From Klebsormidium nitens (Eukaryota; Plantae; Klebsormidiophyceae), in NCBI GenBank assembly GCA_000708835.1, contig DF237580.1, positions 7,312 through 50,421 of the forward strand: 43,110 nt of DNA. The letters run 5' to 3'. The notes under the pieces are model-generated. The model did no database searches and was not told the origin of the DNA. It saw only the letters and a program-made list of their open reading frames with translations. Positions within the stretch are counted from its first letter, which is position 1; each line of letters starts with the position of its first letter. The position numbers and the translations under genes are program-made. This document shows positions 6,561 through 29,860 of the stretch, piece after piece.

Positions 6561-9500
6561 ATGGCCTCCGCACTGCGCTGTTCCACAACTCTTGCAGCAG
6601 CCACCATCGCTGCAGCATCGGTTCAGACAACAAATACGCATCAAGCTAGAAATCAGTCTCTAGCCGTCTCTTCTGGTCCGTCCAATCCCTCAGCAGCTGG
6701 CCCATTGCTCGGGGGGCTGTCCAAAGACTTTACTGAGAGCCACAGAGGAGCAGCAGGCGCGTCCACATCAGACAGGTTTATTTCAGTCATGAGTGGGGTC
6801 AGAGCAGGAATCCCATCTCGGATGGTCCGGGCTGAGGCGGCAACTGCGGAGGTAAGCCAAGCAGCGGTTTCGCCCTTGTCGCTGTTTAGATTGTTCGGAA
6901 CACCACGAAATTACATAGTCTATCAGAAGATTTTTGTGATAGGGGGCAGAGTGTCCAGACAAGACATTGTATCTTGGAAGATGAACTTAAGTGCAGAAGC
7001 GCCACATCGATTGGCTAAGGAGTTGCGGCTATTGCTCTGGATAGCTTGACTGATCACCTGCATGGGTTGACCTTCTGCAGAATCTGGAGGGGAACTTGGC
7101 GACACTTTTAGATCGTCCGTAGGACAGTAGTGTATAAGCCGTTGTTTGCAATCTGTACTGCACCCCTGCTTAGGACTATCTCTTAAAGATTGAACCTTGT
7201 GTACTGTGCAGGCAAGCGCTGAAGCTGCACCGGAGTTAGTGGTAAGCGGCAAACTATGTTTCATGGAAGCTGACTTTCAATTTTTGCTGATTGCTTGGTT
7301 GATTTCGTTGGTCTGGTGTTTTGATCGAACAAGGGTCTTGTGCAAAAATACCCCCGCGTCAGAACACGCTTGCAGTGGACATGCCCATTGAAGGTCGCCC
7401 CGTGAACTTCTGCAATGAGAATGATTTTCAGGATGTGCATCTCAGTTGCCCAGTCTGCACCCCGCGCTTCTGTGTAACACTGGCTTGGATGGTATTGTAA
7501 GAACGTGAGACATTTTCATCTGTACATGAAGATAGTCTCAGTGAACCGACTGTCAACCGGTAGAGACTTCTAATGTGCTTCTGGGACAGGTCCCTCTACC
7601 TTCAGAAGAATAGTAGGCCATAAAGTTTACAAAGAAATAAATTGAGTCAATTAATTCACATGTTTTGAGAAGTGTGGGTCTTAGTGGGGCTAGCGTGACA
7701 TACAAGTTTCGCTTTCATGTTATCTTAAGGGCTATGTTGAGTCTCCGCAGTTCCTTTCTGTTTTGCACAAAGTAAAACCTAGATGAGATCGACATGCTCT
7801 GCAAGCGTGCCCGCTCTAAGCCCCCAAACCAAAACCACTGATCGCTTAGGCAGTGACCTGATTCAAGATAGCCGTAACTAATCAAATTCGAATTCACTGC
7901 GTGATATATGAGACCGTGAGTTTTGGTGGGGCCTTGTGTGTACAGACTGAATTCATGGTGGACATGATGTGCGAGGGGTGCGCCACCTCGGTCCGCAACA
8001 AGCTGCACCCACTGCCAGGTAATCCCACGCAGCCCTGCATTTTGTGTGAAGGCCAGTTTACATCACTTTTAGCTTGCGAATCCACTTTCTGATTGAAGAT
8101 GAATTGTAGGCAGAGGAGGCTTACATCTATGTCTCTCTCAAAAATGGAATCTGCTTCGTGCGCTGGAACTGAAGGATGAGAGGAACTGTGTCTAGTAAAG
8201 TTTCCTGGGACTGTCTTTGTAGTCACTAAAAGTTTGGAGAATGGAACAAGCTGCTTCGGCGAGTCACGGAAAACAGCATGTCTTAGTGGGGGGAAGCAAA
8301 AGATTTCGAAGATTGGATTTCGGCTGGTCAGGATCACAAATATAGTTAGTTTGCGTGATGAAATCAAGCGTCTCAAGGCCAAGCGGTAGCGTAAGTAGAT
8401 CTAACAAAAGGCTGTCTTTACAGAGAAGACGCTTCGTAAGAATAATGAGAAGCTTGGAAGTAAATTTGCTCAAAGAAGTTGATTGCTTCGGAAGGGCAAC
8501 GATGAATCGAATCCTTTTTCCCCTGTAGGTTTGGCAACCTGATCGTGGTGTTCTATCGGGCAGCGAACTTGCATTATTTTTGACATGGTCTGCCGTCGAT
8601 TGGCAGGTGTGACTGACATCAGAACGAGCGTGTCGGATCAGACCGTTCGGATCACAGGGACAGAGTCTCTCAAGTCGCTCCAGAAAGCTTTGGAAGAGAC
8701 GGGAAGGGCGAACAGGCTCATTGGCCAAGGATCGCTTGAAGGTAAGATTTGAGCAGTTCAAAGAATCAACGGCTAAGTCTAGATTAGGGGTTTTCAATGA
8801 GCTGTTGCGATCTTCACGACTCATAGCTCCTAACCCTTTTGTCATACAAAGTTTGAGTAGAAGCTTGTCAAATGCAAGCATCTAGTGCCATCTACTACTC
8901 TCTCGCTTGATGTGGCTTCATGTGCTTCAGGACGATCCGACATGTGGTTTGACCCGTCACGTTTTTTCCACATGAGTTGCAATGTGATATTCCTTTTTGA
9001 GTTCCTCGTTCTCGAGTGATGCTAGCGACTAAGTCCAGGAATCTGCGAATTTCCTTTGAACGTTTCGAGGCCGAGCCGAGATCATCAGGGCTCTCACCGT
9101 CTCTCGCTCATTAAGTGGATGCTTAATTTGAGACCGTCGAATCTATTTGCTTTGAGATCGATCAGAGTCCGAGGGTTTATCCCCCGAACCTCTCTTTCCG
9201 GTTGAAATCTTGAGGTTGAAATTCGTCCTTTTCGTTATTCGTCCTTTTCGTTTACGTCAGGATTTCGGAGGGTTGAGATCCTCTTCTCCTCACTCAGAGT
9301 TGTTGAAAAGCCTCCAAAATCATCAAAGACTTGTTTTTTCGAGAGGATTTTGTTGACCACGTCCCTCTAAAGCTCGTTGAGCAGACTGTTCAATCTGGCA
9401 GCGGAGGACCTCACACTCTCACGTCGCAAGCTGCTCTCTCGGGTTTATGAAAGACTTTTCGCACCGTCCGGAAACTCTTTGGAACCTCGAGAAGGGTGTT

Positions 9501-11347
9501 TCGAAGTGGACCGCTCGCAATCAGCTTTCCAAAAAGTTGTTTCGCAGAGTGCAAGACTTTGGGGCTGTGGCGGAGCCAAGGGCGCTCACCGTCTCTGCTC
9601 AATGAATGTCAAAGGGGCCTAGACACCGAGCACAAGACTGTCAATTTGATGCTCATTCAAAAGGACTTTTTGCGTTCTGATTGTGTTCTGCAGACCCTGC
9701 ACTGCGGCGTTGATGGGCAGACTCAGCGTCCCTTACTGCTCCTGCTCACAGGTCTGCAGGGAAGATTTGCAGAGCAGTCAGTATGTCGAGTCCAACCTTT
9801 CTGGGACCGGTTCGCAACCCTCTGAGTCTCGATTTGCGAAGTTCAATCGATCGTGGCGGCAGAGTAGGAATCAGCCGACTTCCTCGCGGCTGCTCACGGA
9901 CTTGCCTGGTGTCAGCAAAGCCGCACTTACGTCCGGAGAACGATTCTGGAAGCTCTCGTAGTCGCCCAGATTCCGTCGCGAATTCCGTTCTGATCCCGTT
10001 TCCGCAAAGTTTGAGATTTCCGCAGCAGTGGCGGAATCCAAGGGCCCGGTCGTAATGGGCGTCCTCCACATTGCGCAAGTCACCGAGGACACTGCCCGCG
10101 TGGAAGGGCAGTTTGACCGGAATCCTGCTGACTTTGTTCTGATTCCGTTTCGGCAGAGTTTCAGATTTCCGCGGCGGTGGCGGAATCCAAGGGCCCGGTC
10201 GTGAGGGGCGTCCTCCGGATCGCGCACGTCACCAAGGACACTGCGCCGGTGGAAGAGCAGTTCGACCGGATTCCGGCTGAATTTTGCTTTCTTTAAAGTT
10301 CCGATTCCGTTTCCGCAGAGTTTGAGATTTCCGCGGCAGTAGCGGAATCCAAGGGCCCGGTTGTGATGGGCGTCCTCCGCATTGCGCAAGTCACCAGGAC
10401 ACGGCCCCGGTGGAAGGGCAGTTCGACCGGACTGCGGCTGACTTTTATCTCTTTAAATTTTCTGAATCCGTTTTCCGCAGAGTTTGAGATTTCTGCGGCG
10501 GTGGCGGAATTCAAGGGCCCCGTCGTAATGGGCGTCCTTCGCATCGCGCAAGTCACCAAGGACACTGCCCGGGTAGAGGGCCAGTTCGACGGACTTAAAC
10601 CGGGCCCGCACGCCGTCTTCCTGAACCAGTACGGGGACCTGACCCGGGGGGCGGCCAGCACCGGGGGTATTTACATCGACGAGGTGGGTGCAAGTCCTCG
10701 GGTTGGTGTTTAGCCCCTTCGAAGTTGTCTATGGCTTTCGGTCTGTGTGTTGCTTTAAAAAGGGTTCGACCTTGTGTTGGTTTCATTGGGGGTGAGAACG
10801 CCCTGGTGAACAAAGACGGCTCCTTTCATAGCCCGACGCCGGTCGATTCTTGAGTACCCTTTTGAAGTGCGTGTTGGTTTCATTGGGGGTGAGAAGCTTC
10901 TCTTGTGAACAAAGACAGCTCCTTTCATAGGCCGACGCCAGTGCAGTTCTTAAATGCGCCTTGAAGTGTGTTTGTGCTTGGCCAAGCCAACGATGCCTCA
11001 CAGGAAATACGCAAGATAGATTATCAAGCCCTGTACCTCGATCCCAAAGGCTCCAGACCTGGTCAGACAAAACCCACTTTTTGTTGCAGGGGCGGGAAGC
11101 GGGGTTCCTGGGAATTGCCAATGCTGACGAAACCGGCCATGCGGAGCTTCCAACGGCGGTGGTCCAACTACGAGTGTACGATCTGATTGGGAGGGCTCTG
11201 GTGATCTCAGAAAGTGATAAGGTTTCCACGGAAAATGCCTTCGCTTCGGTGGTCGCAAGGAGTGCAGGCGTGGGGCAGAATCTGAAGAATCTGTGCTCGT
11301 GCGATGGCACTGTAATCTGGGAGGCCCAGCAGGACAGGGTATCGTAG
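6561..11347 (+). CDS. CCS: Copper chaperone for superoxide dismutase, plastid-targeted; 6 exons: 6561-6851, 7212-7241, 7946-8018, 8607-8741, 10481-10683, 11090-11347
   Basis: GT-AG junctions in frame. Transit-peptide-like N-terminus; ATX1-like domain I with TEFMVDMMCEGC (MxCxxC); SOD-like domain II (SAAVAEFKGP..GVLRIAQV..ARVEGQFDGLKPGPH...YGDLTRGAASTG; LRVYDLIGRALVI); domain III ARSAGVGQN..LCSCDGTVIWE with CxC. Confidence 0.94.
9985..10480 (+). repeat. Three decayed tandem copies of the acceptor site plus the first ~110 nt of CCS exon 5
   Basis: The unit ttccgcag|agtttgagatttccgcggcggtggcggaatccaagggcccggtcgt...cagttcgaccgga recurs with acceptor positions ~10007 (caa), 10156, 10318 and the real one at 10480. 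Spacing is 149, 162 and 162 bp. Confidence 0.92.
10774..10940. repeat. Intronic direct tandem duplication, ~97-bp period, in CCS intron 5
   Basis: gtgttggtttcattgggggtgagaa...gtgaacaaagac(g/a)gctcctttcatag(c/g)ccgacgcc starts at both 10774 and 10871. Confidence 0.8.
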
Positions 11348-21308: not shown

Positions 21309-21868
21309 GATGTCAGCAAACCCCTGAGCACTTCCTAGAAAGGCCTCCGGAACACACCCCGCAGCGCCTGCAAAATCAGCCCCAAACCTTGCCAACACAA
21401 ATCAACCCTCCACAGGGATTCTTGCCTCCACTTCCTGCCGCCAGGCTGCTCGTCCTGCCCACTCCAAACGTCCCTTCCTCTCGCGCCTGAGCAGCAGCAA
21501 TAGCTGAAACATGCTGCGGACGAACTAGAGTTGCGCGACCCCCGCCAGCACAGAAGCATGTCACAAGAAGGGAGCTCTGAATCGTCCGATCCGAACAATT
21601 CTTGTGGACGCCGTTGCCGTACGATATGCAAACATTTGGAGTGCCCTTGAGCTCCTCAATTTGTTGATGGGTTTTGTGCTGATCGGACGGCTCAAACCTA
21701 TGCCAATGGCGGCTGCACAGCCAGAGGGATCCCACATATGCACGGTCCTCCACACGCTGACTCGGACTCGAACGCTCCAAATTTTTGGAAAGTTTGTTCA
21801 TTTGTTGTTCAATTCAAAGCGCAGGGCGACATTCAAAGCGGTGCTGCATCCATTTCCCTTCTTTTCAA

Positions 21869-23539
21869 ATGGATCAGCTTTGTTCCAGGCCCAAGAGGCC
21901 AATGGAGACTGCGTTCGATGCTGCAGCAGGGCGGCGCTGTAGTAAGAGAGTGGCAACACTTCGTCGAAAAGCAGTAGATGTAGATGTTGTTCCAGATGAC
22001 AGCCGCGCCATCAACGTTGAACCAGGGATGAGTTCGGGTCCTGAAGAATGTGGAGGGATCCCAAAAGAGATGCAAGATATAAGGCCAGATGGGAAAGATA
22101 AGTGCCCTTGTTTTGCAGCTGCAAGCCGGGGGGACTTAGACGGCTTGCAACAGCTGCGACAGGGGACACCACCGCGCCGCTGGGGGGCCCTGAGCTGTGC
22201 GCTTGCGGCTTTGTGGGAGGGTCATTTGCAGGTCGCAGAATGGATATACGAGCAAGACGCGTCTGTTATTGAGGGAGTGTGCTTGCTGGCCGCCAAGTTG
22301 GGGAGGTTGAACTTGCTCCAATGGGCCCGGGCAAGAGACCCCGCGCCCCATTGGGACAAGGAACTGTGCAATCAGGTGGTGATTATGGCACTCAGAATGG
22401 GGCGGCCCGAGGTTGCGCAGTGGGGTGTGCTCCAGAATCCAGCTATGGAGTGCGCGACCACATGTCTGACTGCCGCTGTGACGGGCAACCTGGCGACGCT
22501 GCAATGGCTCAGGGGCCGGACTCCCCCCTGCCCTTGGGTTGGGGTCGATTGCGCTCTGGGGGCTCTGGAGAATGGGCATCTCGAGGTGGTGAAATGGGTG
22601 CGAGAGCAGGACCCCAGGGCAGAGAGAGACGTGTGCTGTGAGGCCGCGAGGCAGGGGAGGGTGGATCTGCTGAAATTGGCGAGGGCGCAGGAGCCTCCAT
22701 TTTGCTGGAACACTAGCACATGCCTCAATGCTGCGATGCAGGGGCACCTAGAGACGCTGCAATGGTTGAGAGGGCAAGAGCCCCCATGCCCTTGGATCCC
22801 CGCCGAGTGCGTGTACGTTGCGTCGATGACAGGACATGTTGAGGTCCTGAAATGGCTGACGGAACAAGCACCAGAGACCAGAAACTCTGTCTGTTGGGTG
22901 GCCGCTCGAGCGGGGAGGTTGGAGATTCTTCAATGGGCCAGGGCACAAAACCCGGCGTTTGCTTGGAGCGAAGCTGTGACCACCGCTGCTGCAGAGCGGG
23001 GACAGCTCGACGCTTTGCAGTGGTTGCGAAATCAAGTCCCGCCGTGCCCCTGGGACGTCGCCAAGTGTGCGGTCTGCGCTGCGAACAATGGGCATATTAG
23101 CAATGTGCAATGGCTGAAGGCTCAAGATCCCTCGGCGGCGACAGCATTGACGCGCAATCACTTGGAAGAGTGCGTGTGGATTGCTACTTACGCGTGGCCT
23201 CCATGCGAGGACGTCGTAGGCCTTCTCAAGGCAGAGCCGCACATTCAGATGAGCCGAAAATACCACGGTAAGATCGTCAAAGACGATTTTATCGAGATTT
23301 TCAGATTCTTGGCAGCGCGGGGGGGTTACAGGTACACTCCTCGGCCGGGGTTGAATGCAGGCCCTATGTGCGCAAGGTTAGCTCGACATTTGATGATTCC
23401 TTTGGATGCGAATTCACAGAAGAGGGCCAGCGAAGTGTTCAAGAGGCAGGTCGCATTGAGTTGTGGCCTTGGAAAGATGGGTGTCTTTGGCGATGTAGCA
23501 CAAAAGATAGGTGTCCTGGCCGGACTCCCCTGGATATAA
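21869..23539 (+). CDS. Intronless ankyrin-like repeat protein (AAxxGxLxxLQWxRxxxPPCPW type); the ORF opens at 21785, first ATGs at 21869 and 21902
   Basis: 584-codon open frame with about five ~45-aa units such as AAVTGNLATLQWLRGRTPPCPW...CALGALENGHLEVVKW and AAMQGHLETLQWLRGQEPPCPW...ASMTGHVEVLKW. Confidence 0.85.
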   Translation: MDQLCSRPKRPMETAFDAAAGRRCSKRVATLRRKAVDVDVVPDDSRAINVEPGMSSGPEECGGIPKEMQDIRPDGKDKCPCFAAASRGDLDGLQQLRQGTPPRRWGALSCALAALWEGHLQVAEWIYEQDASVIEGVCLLAAKLGRLNLLQWARARDPAPHWDKELCNQVVIMALRMGRPEVAQWGVLQNPAMECATTCLTAAVTGNLATLQWLRGRTPPCPWVGVDCALGALENGHLEVVKWVREQDPRAERDVCCEAARQGRVDLLKLARAQEPPFCWNTSTCLNAAMQGHLETLQWLRGQEPPCPWIPAECVYVASMTGHVEVLKWLTEQAPETRNSVCWVAARAGRLEILQWARAQNPAFAWSEAVTTAAAERGQLDALQWLRNQVPPCPWDVAKCAVCAANNGHISNVQWLKAQDPSAATALTRNHLEECVWIATYAWPPCEDVVGLLKAEPHIQMSRKYHGKIVKDDFIEIFRFLAARGGYRYTPRPGLNAGPMCARLARHLMIPLDANSQKRASEVFKRQVALSCGLGKMGVFGDVAQKIGVLAGLPWI

Positions 23540-24760: not shown

Positions 24761-27700
24761 TCAATGTTCTGAGTGCATTGTGCTATTCGGCGTGTCCGGG
24801 AACCCCGGGCTATACAGCCCGCTGCTCCCGCTGGTCATGCTGACGCTAGGACTCCCCATGTGGTTCCCATCCCCGGCCCCCTTTTGCCGGAGGGACGGCT
24901 TTTTCATCATGTTTGGAATACCCGCAACGGTAACGCCGGCCGACTGCCAGCCGACCGGGGGGGGAATGGATAGCTCCGGCGTTTTCATCTCGCGCAGCAG
25001 GAGGCGCAAAAAGGTGTACACTTTGGGGCGGTGCCGGTCCCACTCGCCCTTGTCGCCCTTGTGGAGGATGCGCAGCGCGGCCTCGTCGAACGGTTCGACG
25101 ACGCGCAGGAAGTCGGTGATGTGGGACTGGTTGGGGAAGTCGAGGTCCGCGAAGAGGTCCTGGGGAGGGAATGGCGGGCAATTGAGAGCGTGGTGACGTG
25201 GCAGTGTCCGAAGAGGGTCTTGGGTTAGTCAGCAGACGAACGTGGCAATATATGTGCAGGGCGTCAGGACAGAGATGTCGCATCTTGATGAAGCACCGTT
25301 CTGCATTTCGCCTGGCCCCCAAAGTCGGATCAGCAATTCTCCTCAGAGAGTAGGCGGGCTATGCAAATTTTACTTTAGGAGTACAGAAGACCTTTGCAGC
25401 CATTACGACTGATGTACTTTGCCAACGGTTCGCTCCTCCGAATCGTGCGGCGAACAGCGAACGGCTCTTACCAGGCACACCTTTTTGCGCCAGAAAGAGC
25501 GGCCAGAAACAAATCACGTCTCCTCAAGTAAGAAGCGGACAAGAAAGAAGAGCGGCTTCGACCAACGCTTGAAAGCAAGATTAATTCTAGCGCTGAATAG
25601 GTTCGAAAAGTGGAGACGCCCTGCATTCAAACGTGATGTCCTAAAGGAAAGAAAAGGTGGGTCAATGAAACTCACGTGGGCGACCGGGCCGATCCGCCAG
25701 AGCATCATGAAGCGCGTGAAGAAGTGCGTCCACTTCCGCCGGAACTCGTCCAGCTTGGCGGCGCGCTTGTGCTGCTCCTTCGTGTGCCCCAACAGCTGGG
25801 TGTCCTGCGCAGAAACAAGGCCTCGCTGAATAAGAGGATCTGGCCTTATGATTTCGGGCCATTCAATAGGGCCTTGTTCGGGCAGGTGTGGATAAAAAGC
25901 TGCGTGTGCTGCGCAGAAGTACAACCTCGCGGACTAAGGCGTTCTGACAGTCTTAAGCTCGACCTTTCCGTCGGGCCTTGTTCTGACAGGCGCCGGTAAG
26001 CAGGCTGGTTTCCAAGCAGCTTGTGCGAGGCTCGGAGTCTGGCAAACACTTTTGCACCGTGCTGGGCTTGAGGCGAAGTTTCTTGATCGCCTGTGCGTTG
26101 CGAAACTTGCCGTCTTACCGTCCTTGCGACCCCGATTCGCCGGCCTTAGCGAGAGAAAGGCCCGCCTTCCGGTCACGTAGTACTAAACAAGTTCCGAGAA
26201 ACCTCCACATTCCGGCAAAAGGACCCGGAAAAGATCTTCGAAAGAGACCATCTCCAGCCTGCCCTCACCTTCAAGCAGAGCGCCCACCGGTCGCTCGCGC
26301 CCGCCCCCTCGCCCGCCACGTAATCTTTCACCCCCCGGATCGCGTTCGCCATCTCGTAGCTCTGGTACTTTTGCACCAGCTCTGCGACTTCGCGCGCGAG
26401 CAGCAGCTTCTCCCCCAAAGTCAGCTCGGACTTGTCCGCGTCCTTGTGCGGACGGTCCGGCATGGACGCCGTCTCGAAGGGGAAGCCGTGCCGCTGCGCC
26501 GCCGCGTTGAAGGCGAAGCAGGAGACCCCCGCAGAGTCCCCGTGGCCAACTGCGAATGTAGAAGGTAGATCACGTTGGTCTGTGATTCTATGCAAGTAGC
26601 GACGCCAAATCACAAAATCCATTTTCGAGCAGGCGGGGGATCGTGCCGGTTCAAATATAGGGGAAGCAGGAGACCCCCGCAGAGTCGCCGTGGCCGAGTG
26701 CGCACATAGGGGGTTATTCACGTGAATTGGTGCTTCTGTCCAAGTAACCGAAAATAACGCCGGATCTTATATCACGATTCCGAGCAGGCGGGGTATCGTG
26801 CCGGTTGAGATTGGAGGGAAGCCATTCCTCGTGGCCGACTGTGCAAAGAAGAACGCGTGGCTAATGATGAATTGCAACTCTTTGCATCCTCAGGGTATTG
26901 ACGGCTTATGCTGTGACGCATCTCAAGGCAGAAGGCGGGTCGTGGGAGTTGGCCGACAGCGCCGCAGGAGGACCCCGCAAAGGCACTGGGTCCGACTTCA
27001 AACAGGCGCCAAAGAGCTTTGCGAACGGCACGCGCTTTCAGGCGCCGTTGGCGCCTGAAACTGGTCCGCGACGGAGGTTTAGACTCGAGTCGCTTGACGA
27101 GGACTGACTCATCCATGACCGCATTCGTAAGTCCTCAGTTTAGCAAGCGCACCCGGCGGACGACCTTGCAGACGTCAGCGCTCACGATCTCTTTCCTTGC
27201 TGACATCATCGCTTGTCTGTTGCTCACTCACCGCACACGGCGTACTTTATTCTGTTGGTGGACTCCTCCCCGATTGGCAACCCGCACTGTTCCATGTGCT
27301 TGTGGATGGCGGCGCTGAAGCGCTTCCAGTCCGCCCGCCACACCTGAACAGGAGCGGATCGAGTAAGAGACGGACGGAGATTCGAGCGGAACTGATGTGC
27401 TTGCGGATGGCGGCGCTGAAGCTCCTCCAGTCCGCCCGCCACTTTTGGAAACGAGCGGAACAGATCGGAACAGAGATACGGACGGAAGAGTTGACGGCAG
27501 TTCCGGTCAGTTGGGCCGGACAGTCAACCAGTAAGGATTGGACACGTGAAACTGGAACACCGAGCAGAATGAACTGGAACTCTCGAAATCAGAGACTGGC
27601 TTCCATTAGCAGATGAGGAGGTGAGCGCAGCTAGAAAGTGTAACCCACAGACAGCAATAGGTGCATAATTCTGATTGGCAGGGGCCTCGATACTTCCGAT

Positions 27701-29860
27701 TGGAGTTAACCCGCTGGACTGCACCGTGTAGGTGATCAAGAACGACATCGTCTCCTGTTCTGTCAAGCTCAGATCAACGTTTCATATCACATCCTACAAA
27801 TTCTTGGCAATAGATGCTGTGCGAAACAGCTTTGCCTGGAAAATCTCGACATATTTGGCAGCTGCTTGCTTCAGAAAGGCTTGACCTCCCTTACAACAAG
27901 CCCCGGGCAATTGCTTGGTCGCGAGAACCGACTTCCGCAGTTCCCCATTCAAGCTTCGAGAGTTCCATCAAAAAGTCGTTCGAGGACTTAAGCTACCGCT
28001 GAGCTCCACTCCTCCTGCCATCTCTTCGATGTGCGGCCGTTTCACGGCTTCACCTGAGCAATTTTCATTGAAAACCCGCTTCACGGATAGAACCAGATTT
28101 CCCAGCCAGATCCTTATGTAAGCTCACCTCGGAAGAAATTGCCTCCTTCCAGAACCTGCGCGCGTCCTCGTTCTGGATTTGACCAAGAATGTCAAACAGA
28201 CCGTACTTCGGGTCCATTCGTCCCAACACTCGGAAGTTGCTTAGGCTCTTTTCCAGGTCTAGCGCATGCCGGGTAAAGTGTTCTCTGCAAAGAGTTCAGG
28301 GTCAAGCTGTTACGGCCGAAAGGAAAGTCGAATCATCACCTGCTGCCGGTCAGCCAGCATCTGATCGTTGGGTCTATATCAGGGCACAGAGGTCCAAAGA
28401 TAATCGGTACTTGAGAAATTGGTCCACGAAATGGGCGCTAGAGGACTCAAGAATGTTTTAGGCAATGAACATTTGATCTGCCTCCTATTTGAAGAGTAAT
28501 GGAGCGGAATCGCAAAGTGACAAGGAATCACACGGTAGCTCCTCTTGGATACTGGCAAATACGAGCGGAGCCTTGCCATCAGGTAGAGTGCGTCAAAGCT
28601 TGAGCTTTGGCTGCGGACTCGACCTTAAATTAGACGCTTGACCTCTGTTTGTTTGCGGTGCGTTTCATGGTAAGGAGGTCAAGCTTTAGCATATCTGTGC
28701 TTACAGATGTCAAGATGAGATCTGTGAAAGCTTGCGGAGAAGAAGGTCCTCAGACGTGAAAATTGGAAGAGTTTTTGCTTTGCTTCACATGGTGCGGCAT
28801 CAAACAAGTCTATCGTTTGGGCGGCTTCTCAGCGTTGCTAATCGCAAATAAGGGCAGAACGCAGCAAGTGGCGCCTGCATCCTGACCTGTTTTTGCATCC
28901 TGGAACTTGCGTACAGATTGACAGCGGCAAGGCCAAATCTGAGGCAATTGACTAGATGGTGTGATCCGGTTGCTGATCAGATCCATATTTCCCAATGCTT
29001 TACCTGTACTCCGCAATGTTCATTGTGACCCATCTGTGGAAGTATGCTGCCCCATGGAGGCCCTTCAGCAGTTTCCGTTTCTCTATCAGCTTCCGCGCTT
29101 TCTCTCTCATTCCATGCATGTTCCTCCGGACAGGCTCCGAGGCAGTGGCCATCCCTGTCAATAGTCCAGGTGCAACTTGAAACGATGACTGAGCTCCTTA
29201 ATCGTTGATTCTTGACCACTTAATGCATCCTGCCTCAGCAACCAGGATAGGATTGAACAAACGGCAAGATCCAGCAAAGGCTATCTGACATCGAAGCTTA
29301 GACAATCAGATTGCATGGAGTAGAGGATAGGGCATGGGTTCTTCCATGGGACGAGAACTAAATCAAGGCTTCTGAACCTGCGGCCCAGCCAGATCAGCAA
29401 TCTTACATATGCTGCAGCAACTTGAGAGAAGGACATGTCTTCCTCAGCATCACATGCAAACTTCTCGCATTTCAGCTGGTTCAGCAGACTCTGGTCGGAT
29501 CAGCCTGCGCGGCTCCAACATCACTACAATTGGCCGAGATCTAAGCCAGGGTTTCAAAATTCTATGTCTACTATCAAAGCTGAGGCTTCCTCAGTGTCTC
29601 AGGGGGAGTATCAATGCCACTCCTGAATGCTTACCTGCCAGCCAATCATCCACCGCCTTGGACCGCTTCCCAGACTCCTCCTCTGCCTGCTTCATCCTGG
29701 CAAACTTTGCCAGCAGGCCATCTCCTATCCTACATTGCACCAGAGCGTCCTCCGCTTCTGAAGCGTAGTCTATACAGTGGCGCAGAAGGCTGATGCACTC
29801 TGCTGCTAATTCCCTCAAGGGGTCCCCTTCTGAGGCAACCACAAGCGCCTTCTCCCCCAT
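24761..29860 (-). CDS. 484-aa protein: putative four-helix bundle (MLKL/Cbl-N-like) + Cbl-like EF-hand + EDS1-type EP-like domain + disordered tail; 7 exons: 29860-29635, 29154-29004, 28284-28128, 27343-27232, 26549-26269, 25804-25676, 25159-24761
   Basis: All six introns are GT-AG, phases are 1,2,0,1,0,0, and the total of 1455 nt is stop-free; good gccATGg context. Domain calls by eye: EDARRFWKEAISSEVWRADWKRFSAAIH...VSCFAFN...GFPF resembles Cbl EF-hand [26 protein letters not shown]...ISVFEFD...FQPW; DLDF...DFLRVVEPFDEA...GEWDRHRPKVY resembles EDS1 DIDW...YRRLVEPLDIA...GPYMKRGRPTRY. The confidence score is for the gene model; domain identity is less certain. Confidence 0.88.
25195..27446 (-). 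repeat. Decayed acceptor-side exon copies upstream of exons 4, 5, 6 and 7 of the 24761-29860 gene
   Basis: Exon 7 echo at ~25195-25226; exon 6 echo agctgcgtgtgctgcgcagaa at 25898 (offset 104); exon 5 echoes at ~26660-26700, ~26770-26845 and ~26945-26990 (offsets 148, 141, ~118); exon 4 echo at ~27394-27446 (offset 101). Confidence 0.8.

Follow-up and report, generated by a model that had tools for sequence, protein, structure and literature searches.

The closest described system to the protein analyzed here is the EP domain of EDS1, PAD4, and SAG101 (PF18117; PDB codes 4NFU, 7XDD, 7XEY, 7XJP, 8ZF0, and 8ZW9). Published accounts treat the EP domain as exclusive to the EDS1 family, always joined to a lipase-like domain, and dating from the ancestor of seed plants; a 2026 preprint states that robust EP homology is confined to seed plants, green algae being reported to have only short EP-like sequences. 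In EDS1-PAD4, residues D469, N472, and Y473 recognize the phosphoribosyl part of pRib-ADP, with Y473 stacking on the adenine, and T482 and R493 also touch this ligand. Here, we describe a gene in a 43,110-nucleotide stretch of the genome of the alga Klebsormidium nitens (contig DF237580.1; the whole stretch is referred to below as the window). The gene has 7 exons on the minus strand (coding sequence [CDS] 29860..24764) and encodes a protein of 484 amino acids (aa). From fold models and sequence comparison, we consider it likely that the C-terminal domain of this protein is a remote homolog of the EP core, set in a new architecture. Relative to the published picture, what is new is probably the presence of the EP core fold and the EDS1 ligand-contact motif in Mucorales and an alga, in proteins that lack a lipase domain.

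The window protein belongs, over its full length, to an unnamed eukaryotic family of three-domain proteins that occurs in Mucorales, in this alga, and in a few environmental sequences. The family was defined by the relatives that exon 7 retrieved with phmmer, together with a profile search seeded from those relatives. When exon 7 was searched exhaustively against 1.84 billion representatives, seven true relatives were among its matches (E = 3e-10 to 4e-4), and EDS1-family proteins were absent. Mucorales members come from Apophysomyces, Absidia, Cunninghamella, Circinella, Fennellomyces, and Phascolomyces, and the remaining members, beside that of the alga, are from a few environmental contigs or transcripts (P0001, P0002, P0004 to P0006, and L007). 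All are annotated as hypothetical and are ~390 to 600 aa in length, and a Pfam scan found no domain in them apart from a HET domain fused to one (P0008). Homology to these relatives extends over the whole protein: against a family hidden Markov model (HMM) built without it, the window protein scores 210 bits, with aa 43 to 412 matching HMM positions 41 to 399. Identity is 20 to 24% to the fungal members, 30% to the closest relative (P0001), and 39% to a fragment (P0006). Every signature motif of the family is present in the window protein (GFP, F(Y/F)xR(Y/F)MxxWR, DxDFP, P(L/F)DxA, and PKVYxFL), some in the form of FFTRFMMLWR, DLDFPN, and PFDEAA. Because the family is also found in Mucorales fungi, its evolutionary interpretation reaches beyond algae.

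The window protein itself is absent from both protein databases searched, and no Pfam family matched its single exons. Feature searches of a protein atlas returned noise only (HECT, 0.82; unnamed bacterial clusters, 0.77), and the shape search of the same atlas gave template modeling (TM) scores of at most 0.43. When used as a query, P0005 matched only itself, and no relatives were found in metagenome and viral contigs scanned with family patterns. PADLOC holds no model for the family, and a literature search found no published report of it. The environmental member L007 is a public-run contig of 1.46 kb that encodes a full-length P0005-type relative in two overlapping frames (3-743 and 728-1180), a split that reflects a frameshift or a retained intron.

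Modeled with AlphaFold2 on the family alignment, P0007 is all-helical, with a predicted local distance difference test (pLDDT) score of 85.5, and a domain-only AlphaFold model of P0001 (residues 139 to 316) reached a pLDDT of 91.5 and a predicted TM score of 0.85. Mapped onto these models, the window protein would begin with a four-helix bundle, continue with an EF-hand-like part, and end in a C-terminal EP-like domain of ~150 aa. When the P0001 domain model was searched with Foldseek, the top six matches were all EDS1 (probability, 0.96 to 0.99; TMq, 0.52 to 0.58), PAD4 and SAG101 chains followed at probabilities of 0.80 to 0.96, and all unrelated matches stayed at or below a probability of 0.25 and a TMq of 0.31. 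Foldseek against AFDB returned Arabidopsis EDS1 and rice EP-domain or EDS1-family proteins at a probability of 0.99. The structural alignments span 125 to 153 aa and cover approximately EDS1 residues 357/385 to 501/553, where the full EP domain runs from 385 to 623. Specific superposition on the EP domains of EDS1, PAD4, and SAG101 was obtained for both modeled family members, and their models show the EP helical-bundle fold; the AlphaFold training set included EDS1 structures, which limits how far the fold match can be read.

The EP-like model also matched small protist proteins (AFDB clusters C5KH53, A0A7S0DJB3, A0A1D3CUH7, and A0A0L0GBV7) and bacterial DUF4760 proteins (A0A0F6AEY8, A0A355RJ57, and A0A7K1S6U5), with Foldseek probabilities of 0.92 to 1.0 and TM scores of 0.5 to 0.6. 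These proteins resemble the EP-like domain by Foldseek, and no sequence-level link to them was found. By this modeled resemblance, the EP-like fold may be much more widespread than the Mucorales and algal family.

An hhalign comparison of the family C-terminal alignment with the EP domain gave a probability of 82% (P = 1.1e-5) and paired the family signature PLDxANY..W..(K/R)xPKVY with EDS1 P467 to Y494. With the window protein as the master sequence, the values were 77.5% and P = 1.9e-5, and window aa 367 to 400 aligned with EDS1 459 to 494. Controls with a reversed EP domain and with the N-terminal half gave P values of 0.06 and 0.46, so that for the last ~35 aa the resemblance is beyond chance. 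The register set by sequence fits the structural ranges: seven residues past Y384, P0007 reaches 391, just as seven residues past Y494 brings EDS1 to 501. The EDS1 motifs given in the initial annotation, which had proposed the EP resemblance, are real, in that those other than LAWIEDEYK and GYYDSFK retrieve AtEDS1 residues 420 to 494 from PDB sequences. In a profile check, EDS1_EP (PF18117) was the sole Pfam match of the P0001 domain (E = 0.013; 15.5 bits over 88 aa; profile positions 28 to 112 of 211), a weak, subthreshold match on the nearest homolog. Taken together, the agreement in fold, the signature aligned in register, and profile matches that are specific, if weak, lead us to favor remote homology to the EP core. 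Such homology would make the EP core older than seed plants and would mean that it is not tied to a lipase-like domain. The initial annotation had drawn the same inference, which is supported here by a weak profile match, by the superposition of models of two relatives, and by transcripts that bear out the reading frames.

A number of observations weigh against this reading. The fold evidence consists of models of P0007 and P0001 rather than of the window protein, and the alignment behind the first of them (A2) contained two out-of-frame window rows. Foldseek E values are only ~0.4, and the EP domain is matched over its first two-thirds, with the last third absent. The EP side of the hhalign comparison was shallow (AtEDS1 and the two EDS1 fragments that a 75-aa AtEDS1 query retrieved), and the comparison covered just 35 columns and postdates the recognition of the motif. 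The PF18117 match stays under the 23.1-bit gathering score and was obtained for 1 of 24 members; on the window exons, PF18117 gave no match at E of ≤10, and HMMER, run against PDB sequences with profiles and with single sequences, retrieved no EDS1-family chain at the same cutoff. Identity to the EP domains of EDS1, PAD4, and SAG101 is 12 to 16%. Genomic context comes from only 3 or 4 loci, and no defense-type or immune-related domain was recognized among the neighbors in the window. Two of the positions that contact the ligand in EDS1 are changed in the window protein (A380 and L381 for N472 and Y473), and the place of R493 is taken in the family by an invariant Val (V399 in the window protein), preceded by a Lys. 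A rival explanation is that a generic helical bundle superposes on EP by chance or convergence and that the short PLDxANY/RP..Y match is coincidental, with no ancestry shared with the EDS1 family. We consider this explanation unlikely.

At the positions of EDS1 D469, N472, and Y473, most of the family retains D, N, and Y/F. In the window protein, D377 corresponds to D469, and the Leu at the Y473 position is shared with P0005 and P0006; K386 aligns with EDS1 K478 in a loop where the alignment is uncertain. The conserved EDS1 pocket set (D469, N472, Y473, K478, and R493) is incomplete in the window protein, which has lost two of the three conserved ligand contacts, so that an EDS1-like nucleotide pocket in it would be hypothetical. 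Because of these changes, the ligand of the window protein and of its closest subgroup may be a different one, or they may bind proteins only.

The window protein and its family differ from the EDS1 family in lacking the N-terminal class-3 lipase-like alpha/beta-hydrolase domain: neither Lipase_3 nor any other hydrolase matched any window exon or family member, and the P0007 model shows helices only, in agreement with the earlier proposal of a protein without a lipase domain. Since there is no lipase-like domain, the LLIF lipase-helix contact of the EDS1 heterodimers is impossible in the window protein. Moreover, fungi and an alga carry this family, whereas the EDS1 family is one of seed plants. 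The window protein is not an EDS1-family member, and a true EDS1 ortholog was rejected on four counts: no lipase-like domain, a score below the Pfam threshold, a missing last third of EP, and incomplete pocket residues.

Links to defense come from the loci of relatives. In Absidia, the whole module is fused to a HET domain (P0008; E = 5e-14), and two further HET genes lie within 8 kb; a divergent HET gene lies 0.9 kb from the tandem pair P0007/P0011. The one fusion and two adjacencies seen in Mucorales are located at L002 1-3169 and 8001-11504 and at L004 211-1476, and no HET-type neighborhood was seen at two other fungal family loci. On L001, an 11.6-kb environmental contig with a GC content of ~60%, P0005 (4274-5821) lies between a TIR protein of the CBASS/Pycsar type (E = 5e-11), whose tail is weakly STING-like, and a pair of CD-NTase-like open reading frames (ORFs), both with weak scores. 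This contig may represent a nucleotide-signaling defense island. The HET link and the TIR/CD-NTase neighborhood tentatively suggest a defense role. From these few loci and by analogy, we infer a possible role in defense or cell death, with putative ligand binding at the PLDxANY site.

The predicted first two domains of the family resemble another known system, the Cbl TKB region (PDB codes 2CBL, 3PFV, and 8VW5), whose four-helix bundle and EF-hand make up its first two-thirds. P0007 residues 1 to 228 matched these two Cbl domains at Foldseek probabilities of 0.97 to 0.99, and the family profile reached Cbl TKB among PDB sequences with HMMER at E values of 0.03 to 0.07. The protein could then be an adaptor of the Cbl TKB type, in which a helical domain replaces SH2 on the four-helix bundle and EF-hand scaffold, serving ordinary signaling or ubiquitin-related recognition with no defense role and no small-molecule ligand. 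However, the third domain is modeled as purely helical and EP-like rather than as an SH2, there is no linker or RING, calcium binding is not evident in the EF-hand-like domain, and Pfam matched no Cbl_N, RING, or SH2 domain in the family. The HET fusion and adjacencies and the TIR/CD-NTase neighborhood also point to defense or cell death instead. We therefore consider such an adaptor role quite improbable as a full account, although it is compatible with an EP-like C-terminal domain and does not exclude one.

The N-terminal bundle also resembles the four-helix bundles of immune receptors, namely, the Rx coiled-coil (CC) domain (4M70), NRC2 (8XUQ), the NRG1.1 CC-R domain (7L7V), and the N-terminal domains of fungal NLR (nucleotide-binding leucine-rich repeat) proteins. 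The family differs from these receptors in having no NB-ARC or NACHT domain and no Pfam match to HeLo, RPW8, or Rx_N. Four-helix bundles are common. A functional analog of EDS1, in which an algal EP-like pocket would sense TIR-made ADP-ribose-derived signals and the bundle would act as a helper NLR executor, draws on the EP-like fold, on the D/N/Y contacts to the phosphoribosyl group kept by most members, on the one relative adjoining a TIR gene, and on the bundle's likeness to Rx, NRC2, and NRG1 CC domains, but it is very improbable, as the window protein has substitutions at all three of N472, Y473, and R493, the plant pocket needs two different EP domains together with PAD4 residues, the window showed no TIR gene, and the bundle similarity is generic.

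If the C-terminal domain is a remote EP-core homolog, as we favor, the protein could serve as an adaptor or sensor. Its EP-like domain might pair with another EP-like domain, and the PLDxANY site might hold a partner protein or a phospho-ribosyl or nucleotide-type ligand. The four-helix bundle would then provide the output, through oligomerization or membrane action, in a cell death or defense pathway.

The gene model is based on a six-frame reading, in which coding pieces are flanked by canonical GT..AG sites, and on transcripts. Contigs from four RNA runs (X9, X11, X12, and X1) carry six identical joints, a single 2,462-nucleotide RNA contig spans all seven exons, and the spliced form is present in ~20 RNA runs from several studies. 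The 5′ untranslated region (UTR) reaches past 30000, the stop codon is at 24761-24763, and the 3′ UTR runs below 24500. After KVYTFL, the ORF continues for 81 residues, comprising a last helix (RLLL) and then a tail of low complexity, ~77 residues long (aa 408 to 484). The initial annotation had proposed in-frame splicing of exons 5 to 7 and had called for transcripts to confirm it; the RNA joints fall exactly where it placed them, at GT..AG introns and in the same frames, and the peptide strings that it quoted are found letter for letter in the 484-aa product. The coordinates of these features are listed in the table below.

Features of the K. nitens gene and of the compared locus. Positions refer to the window unless another contig is named.
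Feature	Position	Strand	Basis
Exon 1, coding part, aa 1-75	29635..29860	-	ATG at 29860; RNA contigs, joint 29153/29634, ORF assembly
Exon 2, aa 76-125	29004..29154	-	Splice joints (4 RNA runs), GT..AG introns
Exon 3, aa 126-178, end of predicted four-helix bundle and start of EF-hand-like domain	28128..28284	-	Joints; mapping onto P0007 model
Exon 4, aa 179-215, predicted EF-hand-like domain	27232..27343	-	Joints; alignment
Exon 5, aa 216-309, last part of predicted EF-hand-like domain (with the conserved GFPF), then predicted first EP-like helices	26269..26549	-	Joints; family HMM alignment
Exon 6, aa 310-352, predicted long central helix of EP-like domain (RRKWTHFFTRFMMLWRIG)	25676..25804	-	Joints; alignments
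Exon 7, coding part, aa 353-484, motifs DLDFP, VEPFDEAAL, and RPKVYTFL, then tail	24764..25159	-	Joints; ORF; phmmer matches
Predicted four-helix-bundle region, aa 1-151, with introns	28209..29860	-	P0007 model helices 2-131; VIA matches to Rx/NRC2/NRG1 CC and Cbl 4H
Predicted EF-hand-like middle, aa 156-236, with introns	26488..28196	-	Cbl TKB matches over model residues 1-228
Predicted EP-like domain, aa 257-407, split by introns 5 and 6	24995..26427	-	Mapping of P0007 residues 237-391; fold matches
VEPFDEAAL, aa 373-381	25073..25099	-	hhalign versus AtEDS1 V465-Y473 (VEPLDIANY)
RPKVY, aa 396-400	25016..25030	-	hhalign versus AtEDS1 R490-Y494 (RPTRY); register agrees with structural ranges
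Duplicated copies of exon 5 boundary	26511-26598, 26659-26746, 26757-26822
Duplicated copies of exon 4 boundary	27294-27358, 27395-27459
Neighbors of P0005 on L001 (TIR protein and two CD-NTase-like ORFs)	1304-2197, 7048-8460, 10146-11204

The 5′ boundaries of exons 4 and 5, with adjoining intron sequence, are duplicated in the upstream introns at 77 to 86% identity, and no use of these decoy exon starts was seen in the RNA contigs. A transposon or repeat-family protein was considered and rejected, as this is a single expressed gene of a conserved family. The gene is neighbored by a convergent ankyrin-repeat gene (21785-23539, plus strand; 584-aa frame; Ank_4, E = 5e-18). In their look, the introns and ankyrin-type repeats of the alga may resemble those of brown algae.

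If the homology is true, the origin of the EP core moves far earlier, and the family would offer a simpler, possibly homomeric system in which to study the function of the EP fold. It also bears on what perceives TIR-derived and nucleotide signals in lineages without EDS1, a question that becomes testable. A much bolder and improbable extension is that the EP core is an old cross-kingdom sensor of nucleotide-derived immune signals, present in fungi, algae, protists, and perhaps the bacterial DUF4760 proteins, which is here wired to a four-helix-bundle executor and which seed plants recruited onto a lipase-like scaffold. In that case, one polypeptide would do the job that is performed in seed plants by EDS1 heterodimers and helper NLRs.
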